This document shows positions 40,501 through 64,000 of a stretch of DNA of 64,000 nucleotides, one piece after another. Position 1 is the stretch's first letter. Each line of letters starts with the position of its first letter. Origin of the DNA: Botryllus schlosseri (lineage: Eukaryota); assembly GCA_051294905.1 (NCBI GenBank), contig CM119375.1:3782001-3846000 (forward strand), read 5' to 3'. Under the pieces are notes generated by a model, which was given only the letters and a program-made list of their open reading frames with translations, searched no databases and was not told the origin of the DNA. The position numbers and the translations under genes are program-made.

Positions 40501-43500
40501 GAAATGCTTCAGGAGGCCCATTCGTGATGTACCGTTAAGCCATGGTGGCAATTTCTTCACTGCGGTCATGAAACTATTTCTCGGTGAACAAAATATCAGC
40601 TGAATTCAACAACTGGGTCTACCGAATGCTTCTTGAATTGATAATGATATGTACCAAACTTCTACCCGAGGCTACATTTGAACCTGAAGTATCAATGGTG
40701 TGTTGATTTCTTGATCAACTTTCATTGAGTGACATAGAAGCTGACAATGCTGCTATCACAATTTCGAGTCCTTACAGGCCGTGCTATCTTTTTGTTATTG
40801 GAAATGCTCCATGGCAGGGGTGCATTTAAAATAAACGGTGTTTGAAATACTATGTTTAAAATATGCTTTAAACAGTGTTTTAAACAAAGGCCTTTTGAAA
40901 AAAATTCTTCCAACGTTGTAAAATTATGCCATAATTGTGTAAATACTTTCTAAAATACGTGTTATATGAGCCTACGGACGATTACCACCCGATATAGCCG
41001 ACTAATATCGATATGGGATGGCTGGAACCCTCAAAATAGTCGGTTCAACGGCAATAGCACAGATATTTCGTCAAAGGAGCTATATTTACACTATATTTGC
41101 AATTGTCAATGTCAATCCAATATGACGTCACTATTGAATATTCTTGACGTCATGGCTTAAAAAAAGTATATTTTATATAAGGGCCTGGTTTTGAATATGT
41201 TTGTTTTAAATGCAACCCTATACTCCATGGTAATTGTCGGTTAACGCGAATTGAAACGGTTGATTTAATCAATCCTATTACCCCCCCCCCCATCCCAGCT
41301 GCAAGGTTTCCGACAATGGCTTGTAAATAGGTAGAAGACGCTGATATTATTCGTTATTCACTCTGTTATTTATGGCCTGATGCAGATTATATGATGTGTA
41401 GAAATTAAACACATTCATGATTTACTGAAATTCAGAGTTGTGATAGTTTACTTGGTTGGCTATACAGCAGTGTTGAACTTTACTAGGTTGGCTATACAGC
41501 AGTAAGGTTGTGATAATGGAAGAATGTCTAGCTTAACTAACTCTTCCGCAAAAGGTTGAGGATCGTTATTCTAGAAACAGCTGTATTGCTAGCTTGCAGA
41601 AAAGTGGATATTTCGAGGCAGATTGCAGGTAACTTTCTGGACCTACTTAGGTAATGGCCAAAATGAAGTCAGCCATCCCGGAGTTCTATATATCCCTGAT
41701 ACCAATCAACAAAATGGTTACTAATAAGAAAGGAATTTGAAGATCATGAGCATACCAATAGCTGTGCATATTATCTAGTTATTAACCAAGAAGAGTACAA
41801 TGATTGTTTCCTACGAGTGTTGATTAGGGCCTAACAAAATCAAGCTCTGAATTGAGTATTAGGCTTCAAGTCGGGTATTCGAGCATCGACACTTCGCAGA
41901 TATGTCATTTTCACTGACGTGTTTAACTTTGTACTACATATTTCATATGTTGCGATACTTCCAATCGAGATTGCAAGGCTTCTACAGTTGAAAATAGTAT
42001 CGAAACTATAATTCTCGTCGATAAATTGACCGTTATTGACAAGGAGCGTACCATTTCGGTACTTGAAAATCTTCTCTCGTGACTCGACTCGAATCAATAG
42101 ATGTGAGATGTGACTTATATTCATTATTTGTAAATTTTGCTATTATAACTTGAAAGTGATAAACATACTTGAATCAACTTTGACGTAAGCCTTTGTCTTA
42201 ATGCTAGGGTTGGATTTCAGTGCACAGCTGTATTCCCCATCATCGTTTTTGTTTAGTTCTTTGATCGTGAGACTGTACTTAGACTTGTCGTTTGTCAATT
42301 TGTACTTGGAACCGGGATACAGGCGTTTATTTCCTTTGTACCACAGTACAGTTTCTAATGGACTTCCGACTTCACAGGTAATAGTGATCGAATCTCCTTC
42401 ATTTACCAACTGGTCATCAAGTTTGACTTTGAATGCTACATGTATATTTTAATGATGTGATGAGATGAGATGATGAAAAAGAGAGAAAAAAACATGAATT
42501 ATTACCAGAAAAAGCGATTGTTGATGCTAAAAAGAACAATACAACCATATTAATTACTGTTATATATATATCTGTCAAATATGTTGACTTGACGTGAATC
42601 AGAGACCGCATGTCAATATTTTGGCAGACAAACCAGGAGAGCTTTCTGATGTTCAGAAGGCCGCTGATTTCAAATTTGGCCTTACTTTTTTTCAAATTGG
42701 CTCTAGTTTTAAAGATATAATCCATAGGGCAATTTTGATTGAAATCACATTTGAGCCTTATGTGCTAGATAAAAAAACAGCTCAGTCGTACTATAACATT
42801 AGGGAATTAAATTTAATTGTTATTTGTAAACAATCAAGACAGTTTCAAATCATAAAACAGCAGCATTATAAAATTTTAGGGGTGCTATCCCAGTTGAAGA
42901 CTGTTACATATATCATGTACACAAACCTCAACAATAGATACAAGTATTTACATAAAACAGTAGAAAAACGTTGCATTAATTCAATCAGTTTATGTCATAT
43001 TGATATATAGCAACATGTGCCATACAACACCTATTGTAGATTCAGAATGGACACAGGAATGCAATAAGCCATAATTAGAGTATAAATATTACCTTCTGGA
43101 GCATGTGTCAGTTTTGCGGCAGTCTCCACCGTTGTATGATCTTCAAGCTCCGCATGAGCGGTGATCTCGCCTTCATCCTCCATTGTGACATCATGGATTT
43201 TGATAATGTGCGTTCCTCCGGAAGCCGCGATCTCGAATTTTGGTGACGGTTGAATTTTGATTCCATTTCTGAACCAGGTCACTTTTGCATGGGGTTCAGT
43301 GACACTGCAGGAAAATTCGGCGACTTCCCCAAGTCGAACTTTTTGGTGCTTCAGTTTCTGCTTGAAATCCACTGTGAATAAGGAACAAGTCTAAATGGTA
43401 TGCGAGCTAAACTAGGGAGCTAGGAGTATATGATATATAACACAATGGCCACCCTTTGATGTAGCAGACTCCATATGCCATGACCAGGCTTACATGAGAA

Positions 43501-46500
43501 TCATCTTTCTATAGGCATTAGTCCTGAATTCTGCAGCCATTTCTTAAACTGATCAGACATAGTTATTGATGAGGCGATGAATCCCACCATGCAACATGAA
43601 TCATGGGATGGAAAGCCTAATATAGCCTAAAACTTGAATGAATGATGCTGGAATTATTTCGGAAAATTTATAATTTATAATTTAGCTCCCCTACTAACAG
43701 ATATATGTGATGTCCTATTTTTTGATGATTGTAAATATAAATATACAACAAAGATTATTGATAGAAGGTTGAATCAAAACAATAAACATCAATTATAAGA
43801 CGGAAAACCTAATCCAGCCAAAAAATTGAACGGTCCTGAGATAATGTCAGAAATTGAAAAATTTGCTCCCCATATAAAAGAAATATCTCATGCTTGCTTT
43901 TTTTATGATTGTGAAAACAGATAGACAAGCAGACACAATGTAAATGAGATGTCGGATCATGTATTTCGGTGGGTATGAGTGTTTTTCCACACCACCTACT
44001 ATAATTAAGAGCTTTCTTCTTTGGAGATGCAGCAATTGTGGATGGTTGAGAATTTGCATCCTTCGTCTGATGCGCAGAATGATACTGTTGTACCTCCAGA
44101 GTTTCAACTCTATTGGTGGCTTCAATCGGTATCACCTGGGACTGAGCAACAGCAAACTGTCTTTTGGGTCTGGTTTTGGGTACATTCTCTGACAACATCT
44201 CATTTTCTGATTTGCCTGCGACAATCAGGCTTTCAATGCCTTTTTCTGACTTGTCAGAGATAGCCGCCATGCTAGTCTTTCTTGTAACTGTTTGTTTTTC
44301 TGATGAGGTGGATTGTTTATATGAAGTGTCTTTTCTATCAAGAACAGCTTCGGAATCATCAATGGCGGTTTGTCGTTGGAAAGTAAGCTTAGTTCTCCGA
44401 GAAATACTCTTTTCGCTTCCCTGCTTTTCTGTATCCACATCTGATGTGACAGTTTTAGAGGAGTCTATACTTTCAGACTCGGATTGGAATAATTCAGTTT
44501 TTAAGGCTTTCTTCACAACAGTTTTTGTGCGGGATTGCTTCTCCTTGCTGTCGGCAGTTGAAGTTTTGTTATCTTCAGCACGCTTGCGTATTTTTACGAC
44601 TGATTCCTCTTGTGTCTGACTCACTGGGACTTTTACATCTTGAGAGGCATCTTGAGCGATTTTCGAATGACTGGATGGTTCCGTTTTATTCTTTGTTTCC
44701 GCAACTTCCTCTAACGATTTCTGTTTTCTCACTCTCTCTTTTTCTTTCTGGTCTTTGATAAATTTTTTCTGTGCCTCATGACGCTCTTTCAGCTTCTTTA
44801 TTTGCTCGGTTTCTGCATCTTTCTCAGTTTGATCAATCGGATTAAGAGAAAGATCTTTAGGCTTACTTGCAGATTCCAATTTTGCTTTCAGCGGGACTTG
44901 TGCAAGGGGTGCAGTCTCTATATTACTTGCAGCCGTTGGTTCAATCACTCGATTTCCCACTGGTTCCTTGGAATCAGTTTTAGCGATTTCAGATTTGTCG
45001 GTGACCTTCGTTTGAGTTGATGACTTGCTTGCGCGAGTTTTAACTCGTGGTTCAACCCTAATGGATTGTGAGCTTTTAGATTCATCTGATTCTATCAAGT
45101 CAGTTTTGGTGACTTCGACATCAGCCTTCTCCTTGCTTATTTGAGTTTTAGCTTGAGGTTGAACTTGTTCAGGCTTAGTAGTTTTATCTTTAGCTGGCTC
45201 ATTGAAATCAGTCTTGAAATCAGTTTTAGTGATTTCAGATTTACTGGTAACCTTCGTCTCAGCGGAGGACTTGCTTGCTTGAGTTTTAACTTGCGGTTGA
45301 ACTTCTTCCGGCTGAGCAATCTTACGTTGAGCTGGCTCCTTGAAATCAGATTTAGTGGTTTCAGATTCGCTGGTGACTTTGGTGTGAGCAGTCGACTTGC
45401 TTGCTTGAGTTTTAACATGAGGTTCAACTTTGACAGGCTGCACCTTTCTAGATTCAGAAGGCTCTTTCAATTCGGTATTTATGACTTCAGATTTGCTAGG
45501 GACTTTGGCATCAGCCAACGCCTTGCTTTCTTTAGTGTCAAATTGTGGTAAAACTGCTTCAGGCTGAGTAGTCTTAACTTCAGCTGGCGTCTTGAAATCA
45601 GTCTGAGGGATTTCAGACGACCTAGGGACCTTCGTCTGAGTAGGAGACTTGCTTGCTTGAGCTTTAACTCCTGCTTCAGCCATTGCCGGCTGATCCCTCT
45701 TAGGTTCCGTTGGTTCTTTCAAGTCGCTTTTGGTAATTTCAGGTTTGCTAGTGACTTCTAAATCAGACAAAGCCTCAACTGCTTGAGTAGCAACTCGTTG
45801 TTCAACATCTTTCGGCTGCTTGGCTGTAGGTTGAGCTGGTTCCTTGAAATGAGTTTTAGTGATTTTAGATGTGCTGGTGACCTTCATTTGTGCTGATGAC
45901 TTGCTTGCCTCAGTTTTAACCTGTGGTTCAACCTTAACAGGTTGCATACTTTTAGGCCCCGTTGGTTCTTTCAAGTCAGTTTTGGTGGTTTCAGATTTAC
46001 TGGTGATCTCCACATCAGCCAATGCCTTGCTTGATTCAGTTGCAACTTGTTGTTCGACTTCTTTAAGCTTCTTGACTTTAGGTTGAGTTGGCTCCTTGAT
46101 ATCTGTTTTTGTGATTTCAGATTCGCTACTGACCTTGACATCAACCAAAGTCTTGCTTGATTGAGTTTTTACTCCTGGTTCAACTTTGACAGGCTGCGCA
46201 CTTTTAGGTTCAGCTGGTTCTTTCAAGTCAGTTTTGGCGATTGCAGATTTGCTATCTTGCTTCCTTGCTTGAGTTTCAGCTTGTTGTTGAACATCTTTAG
46301 GCTTCTTGACTTTAGGTTCAGCTGGTTCTTTCAAGTCAGTGTTGGAGATTTCAGATTTGCTAGTGACCTCTACATCAGCCAACGCCTTGCTTGCTTGAGT
46401 TTTAACTTGTTTTTCGACTTTGATAGGCTGAAGTTCAGCTGCCTCCTTGGACTCAGTCTTAGTGATGTCAGATTTGCTAGATACATTCGTCTCAGTAGAT

Positions 46501-49500
46501 GACTTGCTTGCTTGAGTTATAACCGGTGGTTTAACCGTTGCAAGCTGATCACTTTTAGCTTCACCTGGTTGCTTCAAGTCGGTTTTAGTGATTTCAGATT
46601 TGCTCGTGACTTCCAAATCCACCTTGCCAGTTTTAGATCTAACTTCATCAGGCTGCTTGACTTTAGGTTGAGTTGGTTCATTGAAGTCAGTTTTCGTGAT
46701 TACAGAATCACTAGTCACCTTGACATCAGCCTTGCTTGCTTGAGTTTTAACTCGAGGTTGAACTAATTCAGACTGAGTAGTCTTAACATCACCTGACTCT
46801 TTGAAATCCATCTTAGGGATTTCAGATTTGCTGGTAATCTTTGTGTGAGTAGAGGATTTCATCGCCTGAGTTTTACCTTGTGGTTCAACCTTGACAGGCT
46901 GCACACTTTTCGCTTCAGTTGGTTCTTTCATATCAGTTTCAGTGATTGCAGACTTGCTAGTGCCCTCCGCAGTAGCCTGCTTGCTTGCTTTAGGTGCAAC
47001 TTGTTGTTCAACTTCTTTAGGTTGGATAATTTTAGGTTCAGCTGGTTCTTCTTGTAAGGCAGTTTTTGTGGTTTCAGATTTGCTAGTGACCAACGCTTCT
47101 GGTGTTTCGTGTTGCTCTGTTTCAACATCAGATTTTGCTGCATCAGTTTTACCCTCAACTGGTGTAACCATCTCTGGTTTTATATGTTCTGCTTCAGGAC
47201 TCTCAGCAGTTTTTTGTCTCTCCAAAACTTCATCTTCAAATGATAGTCTCTTGCCGACACTTTGGCTGGCAAGTCTTCCTTTCCTGTCACCGGGCTTCTT
47301 CATAATTGATTTTAGCTTAGGCTCGGGGACCGGTGTAACATTCTCGATTACAATTTTCGGGTGTCCGAGATCTTCAACTTTTTCAGTAGGGACAGAAACA
47401 GTGTCCGATTTTGAGGTTAGAATTCTAGTTTTAGCCGTTTTCTTAGCAACTGTACGTCCATCTGCAACATCGTCACCTCGGGTTTCTGTAATTTTATCAT
47501 TGTTTTTTGGAAAGTCAAACACTTGAAGAAACAATAGGATATCAAAGCGTCAAGAAATGCAGTAGGACTCAAAGATATTGCATAAGGTAAAATTCGTTCA
47601 ACGAAAAACATACCTGATATGACTTTCAGGTTAGCAGTGGAAGAATGAGGTCCGGCTACGATGCGATATGAGCTCGCATCCGAATCATCCACGTTTTTGA
47701 CAGTGAGAGAATACTTGTCACCATCTTTCACGATATGATATTTGTCACTTGGTGACAACTTTTCATTTCCCTTATACCTGGTAAGACCACAATATCGTTT
47801 TCAGTATCAGATCCCTGTCATGCAATCAATTACTGATATTGTTGTGTTTAACTATTAGTTCCAAGTCAATAACGTAATGAAGGTGTAATTCACCAACAAG
47901 ATTCAGCAACTAACCAATTGACTTCCGCTTCAGGAACATAGATCTCTAGCTCGGTCTCGAAGACTGCTGATTTCCCATGCCCCACCGATACGTCCTCAAT
48001 ATCCTTGATTACCTTGACGGTTTCTGACAAGGATATGCTTCTTTGCATGAATTTAAACAAAGCAGAGACGTCGGCCGCTTCTGAACTGGCCGACTTGCCC
48101 TCTTTCTGCGGAAAGAGAAGAAATGCTTGAAATATTCTACGGATATGATACATAAAATAGATAGTATTAACTATTCTTTTCAAAATTACACATTTGTTTT
48201 CTATTTATCCATCTGTTCATAGATTAAGCTTCGTGGAGCAACGGATAAATTGAACTATATAACACAGGGGTTTCAAATATTTTTTACACCGTGGCCGCCT
48301 TTGAAACATTTAAAAATCACTGACCTTTTCTAGTTCATCAACCTCTAGAAAAGTTAGGAAACGCTATTTTACTCATATAAATGGTTTAAACGGCACTGTT
48401 GAACAAAAAAATACATTGAGACTTGCACACTCCTTTGTCGCGCAGATATGTAAAACTAACCTTGAGATACTTGTTGCGCAAATTAATTATTGATATCAAT
48501 AAGTCTTAGAGAAAATAAATTCAAAATAAAGATGTGCCTTTTTGCTTTACTGATATGTATATTGAATTTTAATTATTTTCTTATCTTGTAGTTGATGTAC
48601 ACATAAACATGACAAATTTCTTTATTTCCCCGAAGTAGGGAACCCCTCATGTAACACTACATCTGCAAAAATGGACGTAAGTACCTTCCACAGCAACACA
48701 CTTACCGATGAGTCACGCCATTCCTGGAACCTCGACAGAAGTTGTCTGTAATCTGTAATGCCGTAGTTCCTTGCATATTTCTCATATTCCTTCGGATCAA
48801 CTTCTTGCATGAGTTCATACAATCTTTTCAATTCCTCTTCCTTAGAGATACTTTCACGACGAGGTGTTCTGAAATGGATTACATAAATGGAATTCTTCCT
48901 GAATAGGTAGCCTACCTAGTGGGATAATACTTTTTCAAGGCAGACTTGTCGACTTTTTCCACGACTTTATCTGTGACTTCGATATTGAATTGCACGTCGG
49001 CTTGGCCGTGCTTGTTTTTGGCTACGCACCTGTCGATGTAAAGCTTGTCAATGAAAAGATGATTAGCATGATGAAACAAACACTCAGAACAAGACAATCA
49101 TCGATAGAAACGAGCAGATTGAGTATTATACGGTAGTTCACGGACTCGTACAAACTACTCCTGGAACTAGAACTGGAACTGCTCACTTTTCAAAAGTCGC
49201 AACTAGAACTACTCATTGTCAAAATCCGCTAATAGAACTAAAACTCCTAAAAAATTTGAGAACGACTGATGTAGATTGTAGGCAGGCCTACTGATTGATG
49301 TGATATCACCATTTTGTGTGTTCATGACTTCAAATCACATTAGGCTCATCTGAACTGGTTTACATAATAGAGAGTATGCCATATAATATCGAAATAATGA
49401 TTGAAGACCAGGACAATCTTTTTACCTGTAGCTTCCTTTATCCGGCTTGTCAAGTTCAGTTATTTGTAACTTATGAATTGGACTGCCGTCTTCGTGAATT

Positions 49501-52500
49501 ACTTTGAATCTTCCATAGCTGCTGAGCTTTCTCCATTTTCCTTTATTCCATTGGACGGAAGGCTCTGGATAGCCCGTAACTTCCGCAGTGAAGACGAGGG
49601 TTTCTCCTAGATTTGGATACAGAATTATTACATACATCTTGAAAGTTGCCAAAAACAAGTCAACCATCCTTTTCATTAATTATTTCGTTTGTTATGTTCA
49701 AAAGTATCAGTGATCGTTTTAGAATTTGGATAATTGGGTGACCAATCGAAATTTGTTGAAACCTTAATACAACCAAATGTCGAAACGAAAATGAAATCTC
49801 AATCCAGATCGAGTAGCTGGTATTCAGTTACGCACTGATTTATTACAGCAGCTTCTTGGAGGCATATAACCTCAATATACAATTGAATAGGATGTTTAAT
49901 GCACAATGCAATGATAAATTATCACAGAAAGTCATGCTCCATCAATGTCACCATGACTGCTTGTTGTTAGTTGGTGTAAGATTTGAAATACATAGGTGAA
50001 ATACTATCACACGGTGATAAATTAAAATGGACTCGAAGATGCTCATTGCTCATGGCATAACTTGAAGAATGCTTGGAGACGCCGAAAAAGAGAGATGTCT
50101 TTTCAGCGACGACACGGGTAAATCCAGAACATGATTCAATGTAAGCGTACTATTCTACGAACCCTGTGCAGCAGATGAACTCTCTGGAGAGGTGACAAAC
50201 ACCGGTGCGTTTTCGTTCACTTCTCTTGAAGGAGCTTTCTTGACAATTTGAGTTTTCTGAGAATCCTGCTTGATTTGCTTTCGCAGGGACTCGGCTAAAG
50301 ATTGCTCTGAAACAGAACAAATTCTCTCCATCAATACCAGAAAAAACAAGGCCTATCACAACCTGCACAATGCACAATTTGCACATATACTTCAACGAAA
50401 TGCATATTCTCGAATTTTGAATATGTTAACGGTGCATGTTTCAGTATAACTGTTCTATATATATTTTATGGGGACAGATTGTTGAATAGCGCGGCGAAGG
50501 AGTTGCTTTGTTGGTTGTGGTACTCCTGGTGTGTTTCGACTGCAATGATCATTTACACCAGGTCGACATTCTTTATTTTGATTAAGTAGCTGCTGACTTC
50601 TGGCACACTGTCCACTTCTTTGCCTTTTATGATACGCGGATCAGATAGCGTGGAGCTTAGATAAACCCACGACGCTTCGGTAGGGTTTTTAGAATCGACC
50701 TCGCCCGCACTGAAACCCGCAACCTATTAATATGGCAGCCGCCAAGGAGTTCAAAAGTAGCAAGGATAATCATCATCATATTCATCATATAACTACATAA
50801 CACCCGTCTAAATGCAATCGCCAATCGTCCACACAGGACACCTTCCACTTTTGGTGCAAAGTGGTGCGTTGGAAATCCCAAGATAAAATAGGTGAAGACG
50901 AATTACAGTTATGATCTACCTTCGGTAAGCAATGGGATACGACATCGGGTTTCGCCTGCTGAATTTTCGGCAACGCAATCGTAAGTGCCAGCGTCGCCCG
51001 CAGTCAATTTTGACACAGTCAATACGTGTTCGTCTTTGGCTTTGTCGTAGAACGTTTTGACACGCCCAGACGGTTGTAGCTTCTTGCCCTGGCGTAAACG
51101 AAAATATTATTTCCCCGACAATGAAAAGAGTTACCTAAAAGTGGCAAAGATGCCTGATATCATTGTGTAATTGTTGGAGGTACGGTATTACACGCGACTC
51201 ACAGTCTTGTCCTTGCACCAGCACGGATGGGAGCGATATATCGACGGAATAGATATAATTCAATTGTCTAGCTCCAATACATCATTAGTCAATAATCATT
51301 GCCGTAGCTTTATATCTCAGCCGCGTTGACAACGTAGCAGTATCAGTGCATTCAATTGTCGGATTTACATTAAACCACTCGGCGCTGGTTCTTAACAGAC
51401 GTCTAAAACCCTGTGAAAGTCCCACCACCTTCTTGGTGCCAATATATAAATTTCATAACAAGTAGTTTTATTTCCTCAAGCCATCACGAGTGATCTGCAG
51501 CGAACATTCTTGATTAGAACTGATGTCCTAAATTTACGCGATACCATTATAACCAGGGCTGCGGAGTCGATTCACCGCGCCATCGACTGCGACTCCCAAA
51601 TCTACGCATTTCCAAATTAGCGACTGTGAAACAGAGTTGGATCAATTGTAATTTGTAATTGTAATTGAATGTAATTAATTACATTTTTCAATGTAATTGT
51701 AATGTAATTGTAATTGAAGCGTTTTTATTTAGTGTAATTGTAATTGTAATTTGACAAAAATTCTGCTCAATTACAATTTAAATTACATTAAATTGCTATT
51801 GAGACCTGACAAGCACAACATAAAATAATTGACTTATAATGCATTCTCTTTAAATGTCGACAAGGAATTTGGTGGATCCTTGAGGGCGAAGTTTTTTTTA
51901 TTTTTACCGCTATGCTGGCCTCGGCTGCCATTGTATACAATTTTTAGATTACCAACCAACGGATGGATTCGCAACACGTGACTCACGATTGAATACGCCG
52001 AGAAGCGAACTGCTGAGCCGGCTAATTGATAGCAGAATTGTTAGTCCCATAGCTGGCGATCCAAGCGTCGAAATTTGATATGTATGGTCCTAATCGAAAG
52101 CTAGTGTCGCACTGATTCCGCAATAAAAGTATATTTCCAGGCAATGGTACCATCCCAAAATAGTCGTGAAAGTCTGGGAATCGGCATTGTTCTGAACAAT
52201 CGCTGGGCGTAATTGGAAATTGTTGTGGTCATGCTGCTGCAGCGCTCTCACTTTTCAGAACAGTCGGCCTTAAACGGCTATTTTGGAGGAGTTACATTGC
52301 TCTGACGAGATTTTATTTTGTATTTTCGGAATTAGTACATCAATAGCTTACGATAAAGACCAGATGCTTCAAATTTGGACGCATTAATCGCCAGCTCTAG
52401 GACTACGAAGTTTGCTGCTTTTAGCCGGCTCTGCAGTACGTTTGTCGGTGCATTCATTCGTGACTCACATCTTGCGCATCTATCCATGGGTTGGCAATCT

Positions 52501-55500: not shown

Positions 55501-58500
55501 TAGTACAGACCTGGGCAAAGTGCGGCCCGCGAAGCTATTCCGTGCGGCCCGTGAAAGGTTGCTTGGAATTTAAAACTTAAAACTTGCTTTTTGAATGACT
55601 AAAACCATAGGCTGTATCAAATGAACAGGAAATTCGTTTACTTTGAAGCCCGTTCATTAATATGCCACGATTTCGCTGCCTTCGTACCTGACATGCGTAA
55701 TCTAGATTTAAAATAAAGGCAATGTGGCAAAGTATGAGAAGCAATTGAAATCACAAAAAATCACTTTTCCATATAGTTTAGAGCAAACCTTATTTGTTGC
55801 CATTGTCACGTTACGCATTATGCGGTATGTGTTTCAATTTGTTACGTGATATGTTTCCAAATACCAATTCGTAATACAAGTCAATCTGAACTCGCGATAA
55901 TTATATGACTCATCATATCTATTACCCATAAAGGATAGCCTACCATGCCGAAAACTGAAATTCAAAGAAGGTATAGGTTTAGAATTTAGAGCACGAAATA
56001 TTCGTATACTGGAGTCTGGGGTGAACCAGTCCTTTCAGTTTTTGCCGAGCATGTCGCCGAGATTAAGGATTTTAATTAAAGTCGGTCTTATTACAAAAAC
56101 ACGGAACACTCGGACAAGGGAGGGCGAAGTTCAGAAAAACTGCAAGCTTCGCTAAACGTAAAGGGTATTTAAGCTGTACACTGCTCGGAAGGCAGCACAG
56201 CCAAGAAAATAAGCTTTGTACTATTGCATATACATTTCAGTGCAATGGTTCTCGAACTGAAAGCATCAGAACGGTGGCGCGAAGCCGAAGTTCATTGAAA
56301 AAAATTTTCGCGCTAGGCGCGATATACCCCCGGCTTATAGATGCTGCTCTGTGTATTGTCCTACTTTTATATTTCACAATTCTCTCATCAACAGCCAAAA
56401 TAGTCCATGCCATCAAACTATCCGTTGGTTGCACTTTTTAATATTTTGAGATATCATGATAAGGGGACGCGAAATTGTTCACTATTGTTAAGGGAGGCGT
56501 GCCTAACAAAGTTTGAGAACCACTGCTTTAGATTCTTAATAGAGGAACATGGATAGGTGTTCAAAGAGAACTAAGATTTATCATGTTTAACATTGTTTCC
56601 AAGCATGACAGCAAATAGCTATTTTTTTTAATTAACCGTCACTTTCTCATTACCTAATATCAACACATTCACTGAACAGCATTTATTAACTATGCAATTT
56701 GCAAATAAAATTAAAACACGCTGGAGAATATAACTAAAATTTTTCACTCGGCCCGCCAACGTATATATTTTTCTCATTTGGCCCGCGGAGGAAAATAATT
56801 GCCCACCCCTGGAGTAGTGTGACTAGAAAAATTTAACCTTCCCAGTTTATATTAGAACTAGAATGAAGTATATAATTAGATAACCAGCATTTCGCTCTAA
56901 TTAGTCTAATCACACAATTCGAATTATCTAATTATCTAGTTGTCCAGGTCCAATCTACAGGCCCACTGCATATTCCAGACTCCTGACTACATCGACATCT
57001 CTACATACCTTCTCTCCTGCGGTGTATTTTGAGGCTATCAATTTCTTCGTAAAATTTGGAGCTTCAACTTTGTCTTCTGAGGCATTATTTTTAAAGTAAA
57101 ATGAAGTATCGAAAAAACACAAAAAGCCACGCGTTAGTGATTACCGAAATTGATTTCGCTAAAAAGCATGCAGCCGAGCAAAGTAACGGTGACGGAAACA
57201 TACAGCAACTTAAGATGATCAGTGCGTGATTAAAAAGTGATGTATCCACTTCAGCGCGGAAGAAGGTAACGTGACTCGTGAAATGAAAGGAAATAAATAC
57301 GTTCACGATCATACAGGATACAAGAAATGGGTGAAGTGATACACCGCGACATGCATTGTTGAATATCTATTCTTTCTACTCCACTAAACTCGAGCCTCAC
57401 CGTAGCTCGGAGGGTGATTGAAATTGGAAAACCCCAGAATTTGCTCTACTCCCAATCTTGACAAGCTGAATGAAAGCAAAGCGGCTAGAAATGTGCACAA
57501 GATGAAATGCAATGCCATATCGCATAGACATTGCGACGCGTTAGTCTGCACGTTCAGCACAGCTGATGGTGAACAATACGAGGGTGATAATGAGAAGCGG
57601 TGATTAGCTCATTGGAATAGCTATCACGTTAAGTTTATTTTTTCTTATCTTTGCAACTGTGGCACAGAAAAATTCGCGCTTGAAGCTCACATTAACGCAG
57701 TATGCTGGGATCCACATTACGAGATATGTGGTTTTGTTATCCTTAGGCTACTGAATTGCAAGTAACGTCGACTAAAGCTGTTGCAAATATAGTGCTAATA
57801 CTCTTACAGACGGATTATCCCTACATCAAGGCAGGACCGTAGTTCCCAATCTACCATTAGCAAAGCCCTGTAATTGTTCCATACCTATTTCTAAGATATT
57901 AACTTGCGCGCTGATGCCTAATAAAATAATGCTAATAAAGCATTTGACTGCGTTTCATAATTAATAACCGTGTTGTGCTACTTCACATTTCCCGACGCTT
58001 TCGACGTGACAAACATACATGCAAAATTGCCCGACTTACACCTACGTTATAGTGTCCTATACACCACTCGTTACATTGCTAGATATCGTGTAAACAGCCG
58101 GAAAAGACTTCCTGCTCTGAGTGTCTAAAATATCAACTAAACCAGTGCAAGTGCCGCCATAGCATCGACATGTTCGTGGCATTCCAAAGGTCGTGCTTGT
58201 GAACCGCACCTTCGCCAGTTTCATAGTCATTCTTTTCACCCAGGTCTTTAGAATTAACCGCCTTATTCTTCCTCGATATCTCCAGCGTTTGTGACATTTG
58301 ATCCTTATAAGTCCGACGTTGATATGATTCAAATGAAGTAGGCTCGTGTCCTGGCGGCCTGGCCACGTCTGGCCTTACGATCAGTTTGGCCGTGCACTTG
58401 ACACTGCCGTAGATATTTTCGGCAATACACGAGTACACACCGCTATGCTGTCGATAGGCATCACTGATTAGCAGACAGCCTGCTTCATCATCATCAATGA

Positions 58501-61500
58501 TGCCTATGTTTGGAGTTTCAACGCTCCTTGTTATCTCAATACCGTTTCTCTGCCACGTTATGGCGGTCGGGTTAGTAGTTTCGATGATGTAAACAAAGTA
58601 CGCGGTTTCTCCTTCAGTGATAAAGCAATCGCATACTGGTTTCATGAATCTGGGTGGCGCTGCGTGTTCCGGAGCTTGGCTGGATTTGGTAACTACAGTT
58701 TGCGTTTCGTTAGATACTTTATGCCTGATTTCTGATTCCTTGCGCAATTGCTCCCTGATATCCATCTCTTCTCTTATCAGTCGACGAACTTCTTCCGTCC
58801 AGTCGTATTCCTTGCCTACGACTACATGTTTCAGGCTGATTGTGGACGACGCTTCGCTGCATACGTCACTGCTGTCGCTGCCGCCAATAGGGTACTCTCG
58901 AAGAAGGTTATCTTCGCTGAAGTGCACAAACTTTTGGTTGTGATGTCTGTTTGAAGATGATGCATACGTAGCTGAATTTATATGACCAACATTGCCACCG
59001 TGTTGCTGAATTTGGACGGTGTCCATTGAATCAATCTCATCGCTGTCCAACATCATCAACGGGATGGTTTTGATTGAAGTTTTACTATTTCTATTCCCCT
59101 CGTGCGTGTGATGTAGCGGTGGGGAATAGCAGCCACCTTTTGTGGTCATAGTGGGGTGAGAAAGAAGGACATCTTTTCCATAACTTGTCGGAACGCTGGT
59201 TACCGTGTTCATACTTTCGAGTAGCGACAAGCCGGCGGAGAGCATGGTAAGGCTTGTAGCTGTCTTCTGCTCCATCTTTCGGAGATAACCTGAGACAGTT
59301 GTATTACGTCAACGAAAACCACAAATCCTTCAACCGAAAAGCGGAATTCACATGTAAAGGAAATAGAATAGACACTCGGCGGTTAATAATGAGTAAACCC
59401 AGTACATCTCAAACATACACGCCATTACTTACGCCTATATTGCTAGATCGAAATAAGCAGTACATAAGTATTAACGCCTTCGTGACACAGAACGTGTACA
59501 TATTTTATTCATTGTTCCCGCCAACCTAATGCATCGTCGAACAAGTCCGGCATATTTACGCGCATGTAAACGCTCGTTCTCGGTGCTGCAATTTTTATCT
59601 TGGAGTTACATAGGCCTACTCTTTAGACCAGCGTTTGTCAAGATATCTTGTCAAGTTTCATCTTCACCACCTGCGCCAATCACGCGAAGGCGCATAATTT
59701 TCGTAGCAACCCCGGCAGAGCTCCAAGCTTTACAGATGTACACTCCCTCATCACTAGCGATAATTTCGTCGATTCGCAACACGCAACGTATATCTAAATC
59801 TGACGGGAAGAGCGATGACTTGGAACAGTCGAAAGGAATCTTCCACGATGACGGCAAATCATTCTCCTCAGTTGGCAAATGCTGATGGCTGATTCTTCCG
59901 AATATTTCCAATAAAACCCCGTCCTTGTACCAAGCAATTTTGGCAGGCGGATGGGATATCACGCTGCATTTTAGCGTGGCAGTTTTTCCTTCGCGTGCCG
60001 TTACCTCGTCCTTCTTCGAGCCTATAAATTTAGGGGGAATTATTACTTGGAAGGTAGGGGGTGTGCAATAACCTCCACTGTGGCTTATAGTTTGCTTGCT
60101 GTCGGAAGAGTAATCTTTCGAGCCTGTTGTGTCGTAGGCAGTAGTAGTTCTGCTTGAGTCGCAATCAGAAAAAGAGTCATGCGAGCAGCATCCAACAGGA
60201 GTCGCAAAATTAATGTCGCCATCTGGAGTATTAAATTCTAAATCGGACAGCAACGCACCGGATGAGCAAGACAAATATTCGATTGTGACGTCAGATATAG
60301 TAATCATTGATTCGTCGTCAAATGTATCGTTTCCATCGAGATAGCTCGTAGAATTTGAACTATTCTCTATATCAGTATCTTTACGTTCAAATATGCACGT
60401 ATCGTTGCAGTAGTCCGTGTCTAAAATGATAGCTTTTTTCTCGTCGACCGCGTGATCTGAACCGTCGCTAGCATCATCAAACGGTGTACCGGTAGAAGAC
60501 TCTAAAGAATACTGCCGATGGATTATTTTCAAGCTTGCGCCCACACTGTCGCACCTAGCCGGATGCGAACGTGGTTGATTTGCGGAGAGAGGTAAAATTC
60601 CTATATCCATTCCTAATCTCTCCGACAATTTCGAAGTGACACAGTCGCTATCGCTAAAAGACGAGTTTCTAGTCAAATGCCTGGTCTCGGTACTGGAAAA
60701 ATATTCAGACTCAAGGCTCGAGTTTCGGCTAATGGTTCCACGTTTGAATACCAAAGGTCTGCCCAAACTTTGTCTGTGCGTTATTTCGTCGTCCTCGCTC
60801 TTTTTCGGGGTGCCTCGAACGCCTTCCATTTCGCCCATCATGATGGCTTTTTCCAGAGCTTCAAACGATGCCAATGAATCCGCAGAGTCGACGGCATCAG
60901 AATCATTGCTTCGCAAAATTCTTATGTTCAATGGATTAGGGTCCATACTAGCTTGAATTGTGGTTGAACTTTCATACTCAAATTCATCAACTTCCAAAAT
61001 TGGTGATAATTCTTTGGGAGTAGGGGTCTCAAAGCGGTCTTCAAACTCGCAGGGCGACTCGGCACTTACAACAGGCAGTTCCATTGGTTGTGTGGGATCT
61101 TCGTCCGACAGCTGCCTATCCTCTAAAATAGAAGGTAACATCTGATCATTAGAACTCGCTTCGCTTAGGCATGATTTAGTCTCGTTTTGAGAAGCTGGTG
61201 TAATATTGTCGTATTTGAGTTTTAACTGCTCTCTTGGTATTTGTTGATTGCAAATTTGTCCTTCATCTACAGATTTGGATGTGATAGCCCCAGTTGAAAT
61301 AAGGTGATCTGTGGTGCCGATAAGGAGTGACTCTTGCATATTTTTCTTGTTCTCAACGACTGGGTGCGGTGTCGGAGATAGACAAACGTCTTCAGCTATA
61401 TCACGCAATTCGCAACCGTCTGTGGAGTCACAATCATCACTTAGTTCTACGCTAATTGATTTTGTGATCGCATTATTCAGAGCGGCACTGTAATTTGATC

Positions 61501-64000
61501 TTTCGTTGCCGATAAAAGATGCCTCTTCGAATTCAGAAAATGTCCTGGGATAGTCTGTTGGTAGATATTCGTCGTCCGCTGTGTCACAATCGAAAGTACC
61601 GGTGGTAAAGCTGGCAAAAGGTGATCCGACAGTATCTCCGGGTGACCAAGCTCTGGAACTGGGGTTTGGCGATACCGTAATATGTTCATTTCTAGCGTCG
61701 GCGGTGTTTTCGTTGGAATGTACGCTATTCGTCAACTCATCGGGCACAGGAGTGTTACTGAGTGTGCGATTCGGGTCGGGCCGTGGCATTAAGTCACTGG
61801 TAGGTCGTGGGTGATCAACCGATGCGTAGTCCAATCCACTGTAATTATTTTGTAGGATAGCAGTAGCACGATTAACTCCCAGAATTGCCTCCAAATTGCT
61901 TAATGTTGAGTTTACCTCTGTGCAAAGAGTAAGAGCATCAGCCAAGGCTTCATGACATGAAATAACACCAGAGAGGTCGCGTTTCTCTGACACAGCTTCA
62001 TTTCCTTTCTCCCCTATGTGTTCTGTGTGCTCTCTATTCAATCTCACCACCGAACTCTCAAGCTCACATTCAGCGATACCGGTCTCCGTATTCGGTTGTT
62101 TTACAAATAAAACAGATTCCTTACTGGTATGTTTTGAATTGGTTTCAGATGCCGTGATATCGATTTCAGTGGGATCGACAATGTCCGAGGCCTCCAGGCC
62201 ACCCGCATTCGATATCCATTGCTTGTATCCAAGAACTTGGTCAAATTCGAAAGACGTGATAGATTTCTCTCGATCCGTTGCCTTTGACGGATGACCTAGA
62301 TCGATTTGCTGGTGTTCAGATGAATATGTGGAGGAGATCATGTCGTCAAATGTCGGAATGGATCCTTTGTCGATACGGTTTTCTGGGTTGGGGATTATTT
62401 TGGACGATTTGCCTGAATCGGCATTGTCCTTCTCATGAGCAATCGAACGGACCCCACATATCTCCCCATAGTCGGGATCAGGTAAAGGGTAGGAAAATGA
62501 CGGAAATGACGATAAGATACCCGTATCTGAACCTTCGCCATCACTTTTCCTTGACCAGGTAGATAGCTCATCATCGATGGAAATACTTCCGGCAAAAATA
62601 TCGTATGCAGTAACATGAGCGAACATAAGTGGCGCCTGTTGAACGGGGGTCAACCTATGCAGAATATATTCTGGAAGCCTGAATGGTTTTTCAATACCGT
62701 CCATTTCACACCAGCTAGCTCTTGACGCATAATCGTAACTCCTTGGTAATGACGCAGATCTGGTTACACTTTTCAAACTAGATCGTTCATTAGTTAAACT
62801 ACGACCGTCGACGCTTGACGCGCGCCTTGTAAGCCTATGATTTGGACCTTTCGAAAGGCATGGATTCCCGGACAGAACTATACTTGCGTGGGATTGATAT
62901 AACGTCCGCATCGCGGGTTTGTCTTCACGTGTCCTGGAGCGGCCTTGACGCTGCGTAAGACTAGTTGTTTTATCTTCGGGGGATATTCTAGATATCTTGC
63001 TGCTACTAGGTGTATCAACGTTATTATTTACTCTACAGCGCTCAATGCGTTCGCAGTCATTAGCAGATGTCGCTTTCGTTGTCGATTCCAACAGTTTGCG
63101 GTTTATACGCAGAGCTGGCCTTTTGCGCTGGCGGTTCGTGAACTGTGGATTACGTACCTGGCCTGTAAATGAAAAAGCTTTATAAATCTCCCTGAATTCC
63201 GTGGCTGATATCTTTACCTCACTTAGTGCAGCAACATTCCACCGTGCGTCACTCAACAAACTCATGCACGGCATACTGCAAATGCGATGTTAGTTTTTAT
63301 ATTTAAAAAAAAACGACACACATACACACACATGTCATGTGCTGAACCCAAGCTGAAAACTTTGATCTTAAACGTCGTCCCTTTATACTTCCACGATTTC
63401 AGGCTCAAATTGTCGAAGGCACTCACGTAATAGACATTCCTTCTCTTTACACTTACAGAGCTACATTCAATTCCAAACATGTATTTTTTCCAATAAGTAG
63501 GATTCAAACGGTAGCCTACCGTCAACCAGAACTTTGTATGCCATGACAGGCTGTATGGCTTCATGGATTTATTAGGGATTAGGACAATAAAGTGTATGTA
63601 AAGTGTAATATACGGAAATATCAAAGACATAAAGTATAGGAGTAACAAGATGCAAAAAATTGTATGGATCGTTATTCAACCTCATGCTTTTTCAAAACGC
63701 GTGACAAAATGAGAGAAAATTCGTGCAGAACAATACAAAATATCGATATTTCGCGAACTTGATCGCAATCATACATAATATACAAATGAAAACGAAGCAA
63801 AACAATCAATGTAGTTGAACATTGACTTCACTCATGCAATGCAGTGTTGTGTCAAAAATACAAACATCGCTCACATCTCACCTTCGCAAGGCAGTACCGT
63901 GACTTTGGAAGTGCTAGACGCGTCGCCGGCAATATTTAACGCAGAAAATGTATACACCCCCGAATCGGCCGCGGTGGGACTTTTAATTGTCATGGAGAAC
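1..64000 (-). CDS. TTN: Titin/connectin orthologue, multi-exon, partial (I-band through I/A junction to start of A-band D-zone)
   Basis: Dozens of minus-strand exons encoding I-set Ig (W..G..L / D.G.Y.C) and Fn3 (PP..DGGS.I..Y / Y.FRV.AEN..G) domains joined by phase-consistent GT-AG introns; N2A motif and I/A domain pattern match vertebrate titin. Confidence 0.95.
2416..2701. mobile_element. Palindromic MITE-like element (family A), full hairpin copy
   Basis: About 110-bp arm 2421-2531 is a near-perfect reverse complement of 2586-2696. Confidence 0.85.
2750..3329 (+). mobile_element. hAT-type non-autonomous element with internal GACTCGA(GT) repeats, copy 1
   Basis: Ends CAGGGTTGTAA...TTACAACCCTG; perfect 8-bp TSD CTGGAAAT (2742-2749 / 3330-3337). 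Confidence 0.9.
7656..20290 (-). CDS. TTN: I/A junction: Ig-Fn3-Fn3-Fn3-Ig-Fn3-Fn3-Ig-Fn3x6 (14 domains)
   Basis: Exons 19023-19188, 18781-18965, 18374-18488, 18175-18316, 16272-16438, 15662-15973, 14872-15165, 14362-14513, 14047-14296, 13791-13988, 13111-13310, 12904-13018, 12192-12394, 11628-11932, 10914-11028, 10645-10850, 9859-10096, 9150-9285, 8904-9091, 8683-8797, 7656-7958. Confidence 0.9.
10321..10545. mobile_element. Family A copy (diverged)
   Basis: aatatattcatattgaaatgaaccggaatat...ctgacactcgtca...gcaactagtagagaatt matches the 2421 arm. Confidence 0.75.
12023..12150. mobile_element. Family A half copy
   Basis: caattgaataatatattcatattgaaat...tcaggagtaat...aactagta...atatgacgtcac. 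Confidence 0.7.
13351..13580. mobile_element. Family A copy (decayed)
   Basis: gaatagtatattcatattgaaat start; tagttgctga reverse-arm remnant. Confidence 0.55.
15381..15560. repeat. Intronic tandem duplication of an about 80-bp unit, preceded by (AAATT)n
   Basis: gatatt.atgtattaga...gcaactagg...ttcata.agcattttaaa occurs twice. Confidence 0.55.
16480..16690. mobile_element. Family A copy
   Basis: ctcttggaggta..gaactt...caattgaataatatattgatattgaaat...ggcactcgacagg...gtcaacaatcg. Confidence 0.65.
17165..18037. mobile_element. TIR DNA element (CAGGGCCGTA...TACGGTCCTG), non-autonomous
   Basis: Short imperfect TIRs; flanks tagtggggaa / tggtggggaa (9 of 10 identical). Confidence 0.6.
19660..19880. 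mobile_element. Family A copy
   Basis: aatattttcagctgacactcgtc...aactagtaaagaatt...gaggcgaacagat. Confidence 0.7.
20290..34438 (-). CDS. TTN: Distal tandem Ig segment, about 18 Ig domains (exons incl. 34328-34438, 33909-34066, 33475-33716, 33294-33417, 32400-32665, 30984-31152, 30535-30682, 29330-29715, 28374-28643, 27751-27864, 27539-27691, 27237-27378, 27051-27175, 26608-26807, 26391-26548, 26054-26238, 24742-25005, 24460-24682, 23634-23968, 22979-23334, 22378-22509, 21645-21905, 20168-20617)
   Basis: Repeated F.K.L.D..V.E...A.FECE / W.K.G / R.L.I / D...Y.C motifs; splice phases checked. Confidence 0.9.
21058..21565. mobile_element. TTAA-flanked hairpin MITE, Kolobok-like (AGGG...CCCT ends)
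   Basis: TTAA at 21054-21057 and 21566-21569; about 190-bp inverted arms (21058-21247 vs 21375-21565). Confidence 0.85.
22658..22770. mobile_element. Family A half copy
   Basis: cagctgacacttgtcagg...gtcagtaactag...gtatgtcaaca. Confidence 0.6.
24335..24440. mobile_element. Family A half copy
   Basis: aatatattcatactgaaataaatccgaatattttaggctgacactcatcagg. Confidence 0.7.
26925..27030. mobile_element. Family A internally deleted copy
   Basis: tagtatattcatattgaaa...tgtcagccgaatat. Confidence 0.5.
27953..28318. mobile_element. Family A, second full hairpin copy (diverged)
   Basis: Forward arm about 27953-28075; reverse arm about 28210-28318 (ctagttgctgacgat...tgtcagccgaaaatatt...tttcaatatg). 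Confidence 0.75.
29816..30014. mobile_element. hAT/Tip100-like MITE end fragment
   Basis: AGGACA-rich subterminal motifs and terminal GGTAACCCTA; no TSD found. Confidence 0.35.
30745..30860. mobile_element. Family A half copy, reverse orientation
   Basis: gttgatataca...ttcaattttctactagttg matches the reverse arm at 2586-2640. Confidence 0.6.
31381..31515 (-). mobile_element. tRNA-derived SINE (head plus body)
   Basis: Minus strand has box A TAGTGTAATGG and box B GGTTCAATCCC, followed by GGGTCAGACCAAAGACC...CCTGGCGCTCAGCATTA; no closing tRNA acceptor stem. Confidence 0.7.
31716..32225 (+). mobile_element. hAT-type GACTCGA-repeat element, copy 2
   Basis: CAGGGATGTAA...TTACAACCCTG; perfect TSD GTGAGTAG (31708-31715 / 32226-32233). 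Confidence 0.9.
32870..32980. mobile_element. Family A half copy, reverse orientation
   Basis: aaaatatttaggtttat...tactattcaattgcatattgaaatttgtacctc matches 2660-2725. Confidence 0.6.
34515..35227 (-). CDS. TTN: Non-Ig Ser/Thr-rich insert (exons 35104-35227 and 34515-34808; possible microexon 34895-34903)
   Basis: EDGGDATKTGTS...NLSE (phase 1-2) then YQAIAAAEIT...VLSTTTSTSVIQ...DSVTKVT (phase 2-2), joining in frame to the next Ig exon at 34438. Confidence 0.7.
35423..43371 (-). CDS. TTN: About six tandem Ig domains (exons 43093-43371, 42169-42435, 38237-38524, 37194-37324, 36995-37130, 36693-36838, 35844-36060, 35567-35760, 35423-35507)
   Basis: Ig motifs in ORFs 43031, 42143, 38202, 36897, 35803, 35549; phase-consistent splice sites. 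Confidence 0.85.
37548..38082 (+). mobile_element. hAT-type GACTCGA-repeat element, copy 3
   Basis: CAGGATTGTAA...TTACAACCCTG; perfect TSD GTTATTAG (37540-37547 / 38083-38090). Confidence 0.9.
38683..41698. mobile_element. 3.0-kb TIR DNA transposon (hAT or P superfamily), apparently without an intact transposase
   Basis: Perfect 32-bp TIR CAGGGATATATAGAACTCCGGGATGGCTGACT; perfect 8-bp TSD ATACCAAT (38675-38682 / 41699-41706). Confidence 0.9.
40806..41230. mobile_element. Inverted-repeat-bounded segment nested in the 3-kb element
   Basis: ccatgg...gg.tgcatttaaaa.aaac at 40806-40835 is mirrored at about 41190-41230. Confidence 0.45.
44000..47521 (-). CDS. TTN: Giant PEVK-analogous exon (3522 nt, 1174 codons, phase 1-1) with a 42-aa tandem repeat array
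   Basis: ORF 43809..47534; acceptor ttcttcaag before 47521; likely donor GTAGGT after 44000; K/E/S/T/P/Q/V-rich. Confidence 0.85.
44960..47090 (-). repeat. Coding tandem repeat, about 18 units of about 126 nt (consensus like VTSKSEITKTDLKEPAEPKSAQPVKVEPQVKTQASKSSAQTK)
   Basis: Units counted in the translation; recurring plus-strand motifs gatttcagattt, gacttgcttgcttgagttttaac. Confidence 0.9.
47614..50306 (-). CDS. TTN: N2A element: linker + I80-like Ig, UN2A unique sequence, I81-like Ig (exons 50163-50306, 49426-49606, 48931-49029, 48706-48868, 47915-48105, 47614-47777)
   Basis: W.KGKWR motif in the first Ig; ALKKTP...EEE...VDPKEYEKYARNYGITDYRQLL; ETVKVIKDIED...YKGNEKLSPSDK...YRIVAGPH; all closely resemble recalled vertebrate I80-UN2A-I81. 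Confidence 0.9.
50920..53512 (-). CDS. TTN: One Ig domain in two exons (53394-53512, 50920-51088)
   Basis: IAPEFVTRP...KIKGIPKPEIYWEKE joined in phase 0 to GKKLQPSGRVKTF...GDAGTYDCVAENSAG. Confidence 0.85.
51632..53151. mobile_element. 1.5-kb hAT-type non-autonomous element with (TAATTG)n subterminal arrays
   Basis: TIR CAGAGTTGGATCAATT; perfect TSD CTGTGAAA (51624-51631 / 53152-53159); gtaatt repeats at both ends. Confidence 0.9.
54938..57076 (-). CDS. TTN: One Ig domain in three small exons (57009-57076, 55223-55362, 54938-55014)
   Basis: Manual splicing gives DKVEAPNFTKKL...VRLHCQLTGSSPIQITWSKDG...SDSGEYSVMAKNKKGVATCSAYLTVE; not in the ORF track. Confidence 0.85.
55506..56811. mobile_element. 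hAT (Charlie-like) non-autonomous element
   Basis: CAGACCTGGGCAA...TTGCCCACCCCTG; CGGCCCGC subterminal motifs; TSD gattagta / gagtagtg (6 of 8, central TA). Confidence 0.75.
56243..56525. mobile_element. Small hAT MITE nested in the 55506-56811 element
   Basis: caatggttctcgaact ... agtttgagaaccactg TIR pair (14 of 17 match); TSD not conserved. Confidence 0.55.
58133..59289 (-). CDS. TTN: Exon with about 200 aa unique sequence, one Ig domain (PPRFMKPVCDC...HSGVYSCIAEN) and a tail; ends at a weak donor (58210 or 58240) or at the 58133 stop
   Basis: ORF 58133..59275; acceptor ctgtctcag before 59289 (phase 1). Confidence 0.8.
59504..59509 (-). terminator. Candidate polyadenylation signal AATAAA
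   Basis: Plus-strand TTTATT about 140 nt downstream of the 59651 stop in the direction of transcription. Confidence 0.5.
59651..63162 (-). CDS. TTN: Large unique-sequence exon (about 1170 aa, Ser/Asp/Glu-rich) ending in one Ig domain and a stop codon; candidate alternative terminal exon
   Basis: ORF 59651..63274; acceptor tttcatttacag before 63162 (phase 1, matches upstream donor); C-terminal PPKF...WYKDG...DEGVYICKA Ig; TGA ending at 59651. Confidence 0.8.
63882..64000 (-). CDS. TTN: Ig domain C-terminal half (partial exon): FSMTIKSPTAADSGVYTFSALNIAGDASSTSKVTVLPCE
   Basis: Manual translation shows DSGVY..A.N..G Ig motif; phase-1 donor GTGAGA follows 63882. Confidence 0.85.

Follow-up and report, generated by a model that had tools for sequence, protein, structure and literature searches.

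Does the N2A signalling element of titin, in which the immunoglobulin (Ig) domains I80 and I81 flank a unique sequence (UN2A), occur outside the vertebrates? Within the titin spring, N2A is the main signalling node, and both muscular dystrophy (mdm mouse, calpainopathy) and the cardiac stress response have been linked to it. The question is raised by a 64,000-nucleotide (nt) stretch of contig CM119375.1 (3,782,001-3,846,000; hereafter the window, with positions counted from its start), in which an inspection of the letters alone, the sequence-only reading, had noticed a candidate I80-UN2A-I81 element at 47614-50306. We find there a spliced and expressed element that is very probably the tunicate orthologue of the titin N2A core, in the I-band of a titin/connectin gene. 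The favoured explanation as a whole, an N2A-core orthologue working as a docking platform between springs, has in our estimate a probability of about 0.8.

Six minus-strand exons (Table 1), with boundaries placed from sequence and canonical AG acceptors and GT donors throughout, join into one open frame. The spliced product of 313 residues consists of a charged linker, an I80-like Ig, unique sequence and an I81-like Ig, in the order linker, I80-like Ig, ...SALKK/TPRRESISKEEELKRLYELMQEVDPKEYEKYARNYGITDYRQLLSRFQEWRDSS/KEGK...ALFKFMQRSISLSETVKVIKDIED..., I81-like Ig (slashes denote exon junctions). All peptides quoted in the sequence-only reading were found on the minus strand by stop-to-stop translation. 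Logan contigs of runs X15, X7 and X5, from three independent studies, skip precisely these introns, with junctions at 47777/47915, 48105/48706, 48868/48931, 49029/49426, 49606/50163 and 50306/50920. The skipped introns have CT..AC ends on the plus strand, equivalent to GT..AG on the minus strand, and one X15 contig covers 1,503 nt across seven exons. In run X23, only two raw RNA reads lie on the stretch. Because contigs from three studies reproduce each junction, the earlier observation is confirmed, coordinates included: the I81-like exon does end, on its 3' side, at 47614, and the exon starting the I80-like domain has its 5' end at 50306.

Exon C (54 residues) matches the Pfam tri-helix bundle (THB) family PF18362 (4.8e-9). 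The matching model was built on MyBP-C, and the RRxS upstream of the bundle recalls MyBP-C phosphorylation sites; the bundle might accordingly be an M-domain, and the gene MyBP-C/IGFN1-like rather than titin. We consider this highly improbable. Searched against all PDB sequences, exon C has its best match in the solved UN2A helical core of human titin (7NIP; E 8.1e-11, 44.5 bits), well beyond chance expectation and 15 bits above any MyBP-C; the slow and cardiac MyBP-C bundles reach at most 29.4 bits (E 5.8e-6 or weaker). Moreover, the other THB exons of this genome, on C2 and C4, are both of MyBP-C type and only 21-24% identical to exon C, and a tree of 40-residue cores splits titin-type from MyBP-C-type bundles with support 94/87. 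The M-domain bundle (PF18362; 9PFE, 5K6P, 2LHU) does belong to the same small fold family, shares [DE]YE..A..YG[IV].D.R with the window and likewise has basic phosphorylation motifs on its N-terminal side. However, it is a separate paralogue in another gene context: its host is a short thick-filament protein, in which it lies between the Ig domains C1 and C2. Exon C has no such setting: its flanking Igs are of I80 and I81 type, and further along the gene come some two dozen Ig domains, followed by Ig/Fn3 super-repeats. The expectation that titin, not MyBP-C, would be the best match was thus borne out. Ig exons also follow the THB exons at the two other loci (L003, G000:C2:10789183, and L004, G000:C4:29146937). 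Of these copies, the one on C2 is a typical M-domain bundle of MyBP-C, and the one on C4 (IIEILKTAEPHDYERICMEYGFFDFR) has diverged strongly.

When 1.84 billion cluster representatives were searched exhaustively with exon C by HMMER, 48 matches were obtained, among which two classes were distinguished by their tails. The first comprises vertebrate titin fragments with ...RGLLQA, the named ones being from rodent, bird, tortoise, teleosts and whale shark. The second has ...RQLLSR or a more divergent tail (P0011, P0044), and its sole named member is Ciona savignyi titin (UniRef100_H2YLF8, P0005). Exon C falls in the ...RQLLSR class. In the tree, the window forms a clade with C. savignyi titin (support 92/89), although the columns are few and only the deep splits should therefore be trusted. 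The C. savignyi fragment carries a titin-type THB with RQLLSR and is 64% identical to the window exon. It is an automatic gene model in which exons are probably skipped, as it starts in UN2A and continues with an Ig other than I81; the readable part of its record holds no N2A annotation or commentary. On these alignments, the bundle is assigned as the orthologue of vertebrate titin UN2A.

AlphaFold2, run on the alignment, predicted three helices (residues 9-22, 25-34 and 40-53; mean pLDDT 74.7). The 54-residue model had no match in the PDB by Foldseek, and a wide VIA-align search gave generic helical matches only (Z < 5). A domain of this size is too small for informative structure searches, so the sequence evidence stands alone. 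Some of the 48 matches were rejected: long proteins with 3-7 matching stretches (P0025, P0034, P0046) are YIQNYGITDQ repeat proteins that have only the word NYGITD in common with the bundle and are not relatives, and P0042 was set aside with them as an unrelated repeat protein on the same score pattern. Another match, P0006, is a Tara Oceans transcript (ERR1712136_217495), presumably from a pelagic tunicate, that encodes an I80-like Ig and a titin-type bundle with the tunicate-like RQLLSR.

To place the flanking Ig domains, vertebrate N2A fragments were compared by BLAST with all open frames of the window, in which about 30 other Ig exons served as decoys. For three of four fragments, I81 matched exon E at 46-55% identity (expectation values down to 1e-16), compared with about 30% or less for decoys. 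In the whale-shark fragment P0043, the alignment extends beyond exon E and, at 33% over 106 residues, is approximately level with a decoy. When the spliced peptide was aligned to human titin N2A, the I81-like Ig was 50% identical to human I81 (7AHS) over 88 residues without a gap, far above its identity to I82 (18%) or I83 (34%). Exon D, for its part, has the titin I81 entries 7AHS and 5JOE as its sole PDB matches. Features peculiar to I81 among titin Igs have been described (PMC8305307), and the I81-like Ig has these oddities: strand A lacks PPxf, the BC loop is of the Y-PE form, and GPH replaces NxxG.

The upstream domain was likewise assessed by motif and by match. Within the window, the KGKWR/KGKW motif occurs in exon A alone, and the domain has a PxP BC loop and an NxxG FG loop; these motifs fit I80, which is described as an N-conserved type. 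Vertebrate I80 segments match exon A better than any other part of the window (40-47% identity, with a modest margin), as does the Tara transcript (52%). The W.KGKWR Ig had been read as an I80-type domain preceding UN2A, and this assignment holds.

Overall, the window resembles the vertebrate element (I80-UN2A-I81-I82-I83; human TTN; structures 7NIP for UN2A, 5JOE for I81 and 7AHS for I81-I83) in its domain order of I80, three-helix UN2A and I81. The vertebrate core VDPKEYEKYAR.YGITD[FY]R.LL is nearly identical in the window, the linker motif F.Q.R..S..E.V..IKDIE is common to both, and both elements lie between tandem Ig domains and a spring. The bundle exon starts ...LKK/TP..., at the same position and in the same phase as in mammalian genomic fragments. 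An intron at W/YKG within I81 is present in the window and absent in mammals.

These shared details also bear on the idea that tunicate titin acquired the bundle on its own through exon shuffling, its likeness to UN2A being parallel. As a small, single-exon domain found in several muscle genes, a THB could travel in this way. However, both neighbours of the bundle are specifically I80-like and I81-like, and a parallel origin would have to account for the LKK/TP junction and the linker motif as well. We give this explanation very little credence.

Is the host a vertebrate after all? The near identity of the core motif would suit a vertebrate source with an ordinary titin N2A, but of the explanations considered we rank this as the least probable. 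In the 496-Mb assembly, a cellulose-synthase GT2 domain (PF03552; C9:15029126-15029521) and a GH6 domain (PF01341; C9:15025585-15025875) lie on the same strand about 3.5 kb apart, and a second same-strand pair lies on C9 at 15088283 (GT2) and 15068570 (GH6). Among animals, a cellulose synthase with GT2 fused to GH6 is not known outside the tunicates. The bundle has the RQLLSR signature of the C. savignyi clade rather than RGLLQA, and a single 3.5-kb spring exon stands in place of many small PEVK exons, with I82 and I83 absent. Given the GT2/GH6 pairs and the C. savignyi affinity of the element, the host is identified by its gene content as a tunicate, in agreement with the sequence-only reading, which had judged the source apparently non-vertebrate and tunicate-like. 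The source is therefore no vertebrate and the best matches are not MyBP-C/igfn1-type proteins, the two outcomes that this reading had named as standing against it. A Ciona spliced-leader 16-mer occurs once in the genome, and the species may use another leader. The two cellulose-synthase loci (C9:15025585-15029521 and C9:15068570-15088690) are neighbouring same-strand genes, each with GT2 upstream of GH6, and resemble a tandem pair of tunicate CesA.

The whole window is one minus-strand gene, and many of its exons are matched by C. savignyi titin. Its predicted domain order (Table 1) matches the I-band to A-band layout of titin. The element lies in the I-band part, with tandem Ig upstream and a spring exon downstream.

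Three tunicate-like relatives, L009 (ENA), L010 (the closest relative) and L011, have the same exon-by-exon layout of the element, with exon D (the linker and the N-terminal half of I81) conserved in each. In vertebrates, a PKA/PKG site has been mapped by experiment to Ser-9895, where UN2A borders on I81 (PMC7093598). At this border, human FIQQRLSQTEPV aligns without gaps to window FMQRSISLSETV. The serine of window MQRSIS is thereby aligned to Ser-9895 in human QQRLS, with the basic residue at -3 instead of -2, and it is kept in all three relatives (MQRSMS, MQKSLS). A different motif, RRES, had been noted as a PKA-type site just upstream of the conserved helix. The motif is indeed there, but it lies on the other side of the bundle from the site mapped in vertebrates, which have no RRES/RRDS upstream of the bundle, and it is lineage-specific: only the closest relative has it, as RRDS, so it is a young feature. 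With no counterpart in L009, L011 or C. savignyi, RRES was rejected as a generally conserved PKA site.

Directly after I81, in the position of PEVK, lies an open frame of 1,236 residues, of which the exon itself (44000-47521) takes up 1,174 codons. It is bounded by a phase-compatible acceptor (47521) and a GTAGGT donor (44000), and it has a length of 3,522 nt divisible by 3, a repeat period of 126 nt (42 residues), and a P+E+V+K content of 39.6%; a Pfam search of the exon found no family. The vertebrate spring, in comparison, consists of many 28-residue PEVK exons. By analogy, the exon is a putative single-exon stand-in for the vertebrate PEVK, with a spring-like character. Contigs of X15 and X7 join 47614 to 43371, and their loose end maps exactly to 43342-43371. 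Because these contigs, which show the only isoform seen at this junction, skip a frame-neutral exon, the exon behaves like a cassette. That other isoforms include it is inferred from the open frame, the splice sites, conservation in L010 and one depth bin in one run.

Relatives differ in this part of the gene. L009 has a charged open frame of 612 residues after I81 that is analogous to the repeat exon. Since L011 has no such exon and the lengths differ (612 residues in L009, about 1,174 in the window), the spring exon seems to be lineage-specific in presence and length. In L011 (3451-4334), an ordinary Ig exon follows within about 200 nt of the I81-like exon, with no large unique exon. The unique N-terminal part of the repeat exon, including a KRLSFEDEV motif, is kept in L010.

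What would such an element do in a tunicate? The partners in vertebrates are MARPs for UN2A-I81, calpain-3 for I80-UN2A and I82-PEVK, and SMYD2 for UN2A (PMC8042602, PMC8305307). By analogy, the element may fold into a docking platform where two spring segments meet. An ankyrin-repeat protein of MARP type would dock there in the vertebrate manner, on the I81 BC loop together with the C-terminal linker and a helical hairpin. A basophilic kinase would phosphorylate the conserved serine at the UN2A/I81 border, and the spring behind the platform would be longer or shorter according to whether the repeat exon (1,174 codons) is included. Zhou et al. 2021 reportedly described the CARP interface as made up of these three parts, the hairpin belonging to the bundle. 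Between tunicate and vertebrate, the UN2A-I81 stretch is much better conserved than the neighbouring Igs, which suggests a retained interaction surface. That partner docking itself is conserved we regard as close to an even chance, falling slightly on the doubtful side.

The main rival reading accepts an N2A orthologue but holds that tunicates have no MARP/calpain-3 hub: the core would be conserved for another reason, as a mechanical or structural junction or for an older partner (SMYD2/Hsp90, a conventional calpain, the thin filament), and the MARP signalosome would have been added in vertebrates together with I82-I83. We view this as a serious possibility, somewhat short of even. It draws on several observations that weigh against an N2A platform of vertebrate type. 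In the BLAST comparison with decoys, vertebrate I82 and I83, which are part of the vertebrate N2A, had no specific partner among the window open frames. The next Ig in the transcripts (43090-43371) is only 28-31% identical to human I81, I82 or I83 and therefore does not qualify as a specific orthologue of I82 or I83. Vertebrate UN2A has an acidic EIEELEKSERDEKEFEE stretch as its C-terminal half; this stretch is not conserved in the window, which has a shorter, Ser/Ala-rich linker. The main calpain-3 site in vertebrates is formed by I82-I83 with the start of PEVK, and I80-UN2A is secondary. In the window, the region of the primary I83-PEVK site is absent and that of the secondary I80-UN2A site is present. 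Finally, a 2025 study using shark data dates N2A isoforms to more than 450 million years, within jawed vertebrates (PMC12241362), and the literature searched holds no report of MARPs in ascidians. Against a core without a hub, the reported parts of the CARP interface are the best-conserved parts of the element, and calpain catalytic domains are found at six loci in the genome.

We therefore retain the docking platform as the favoured explanation with two amendments to the sequence-only reading. Of the proposed I80-UN2A-I81 element, the core itself stands, and I82/I83, the calpain-3 region of vertebrate N2A, have no counterpart. Likewise, the proposal that the mechanosensing hub predates vertebrates applies in part: with the I80-UN2A-I81 core expressed in a tunicate, this part of the stress-sensing hub is very probably older than vertebrates, and the part comprising I82/I83 is absent. 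It is a tentative suggestion, more doubtful than probable, that the common ancestor of tunicates and vertebrates already combined the N2A platform with a stress-signalling partner of MARP type.

The literature searched treats N2A as a vertebrate feature, and a tunicate core would move the origin of the platform to the tunicate-vertebrate ancestor. That literature contained no statement of an N2A element in tunicate titin (the ascidian connectin paper of Hanashima et al. 2012, Methods 56:18, lay outside its scope) and no mention of invertebrates in N2A reviews. On this comparison, the ancient parts would be the helix bundle, the border serine and I81 with its odd loops, and the vertebrate additions would be I82-I83 and the acidic linker. 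In evolutionary terms, this sets the probable MARP site apart from that of calpain-3. The gain is incremental, as the element's sequence is already in public gene models and its platform function is putative. If the common ancestor had both the platform and a MARP-type partner, ascidians keep a minimal N2A (I80-UN2A-I81 without I82-I83) beside one spring exon that can be skipped, which would make them a simple genetic model of titin mechanosensing and of the coupling of spring length with signalling. Transparency, compact genomes and access to CRISPR editing make ascidians a possible test system.

Table 1. Features of the minus-strand gene in the window, listed in the direction of transcription; letters A to E name exons of the element.
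Feature	Position	Strand	Basis
Ig exons, then N2A-like element, then 1,236-residue open frame, then about two dozen Ig domains		-	Gene order
Large Ig-containing exons	63-58 kb	-	Gene layout, 5' part
C-terminal part of the preceding Ig (I79 position)	50920-51088	-	Pfam I-set 3.4e-10; joined to 50306 in X15 and X5 contigs
Charged linker of about 30 residues and N-terminal strand of I80-like Ig (APVFVTSPE...)	50163-50306	-	Junctions 50306/50920 and 49606/50163
A: middle of I80-like Ig, GYPEPSVQW and KGKWR	49426-49606	-	Pfam I-set 5.5e-9; GT-AG; RNA junctions
B: end of I80-like Ig (NKHG = NxxG) and start of unique sequence, ending ...SALKK	48931-49029	-	Splice sites; RNA junctions
C: UN2A-like exon, TPRRESIS lead-in and tri-helix bundle core VDPKEYEKYARNYGITDYRQLL	48706-48868	-	THB 4.8e-9; 7NIP 8.1e-11
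D: C-terminal UN2A linker ALFKFMQRSISLSE and N-terminal half of I81-like Ig, BC loop EIYVPEAE	47915-48105	-	PDB matches; alignment
E: C-terminal half of I81-like Ig (YKGNEKLSPSDKY...YRIVAGPHSS...)	47614-47777	-	Pfam I-set 2.8e-7; RNA junctions
Optional 3,522-nt exon: unique N-terminal part, then 42-residue K/E/T/S/P/V-rich repeats	44000-47521	-	Open frame; splice sites; period
First Ig exon after the element (3' limit provisional)	43090-43371	-	Pfam I-set 3.1e-16; joined straight to I81-like exon in transcripts
16 Fn3-type frames interleaved with Ig	About 19 kb and below	-	Gene layout, 3' part

Some minor observations concern the surroundings of the element. The exon at 50920-51088 has a partner exon upstream near 53391. 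The intron between exons A and B contains a segment (49105-49251) with a contig depth of about 690 in X5, joints that go back and many loose ends, and it resembles a high-copy, possibly transcribed repeat of AACTAGAACT-like units. Near the 5' end of the gene in the window, two open frames of 1,212 and 391 residues (59654-63289 and 58136-59308, minus strand) lie in a stretch of higher GC content (about 45%); they consist mainly of unique sequence with one I-set Ig each.

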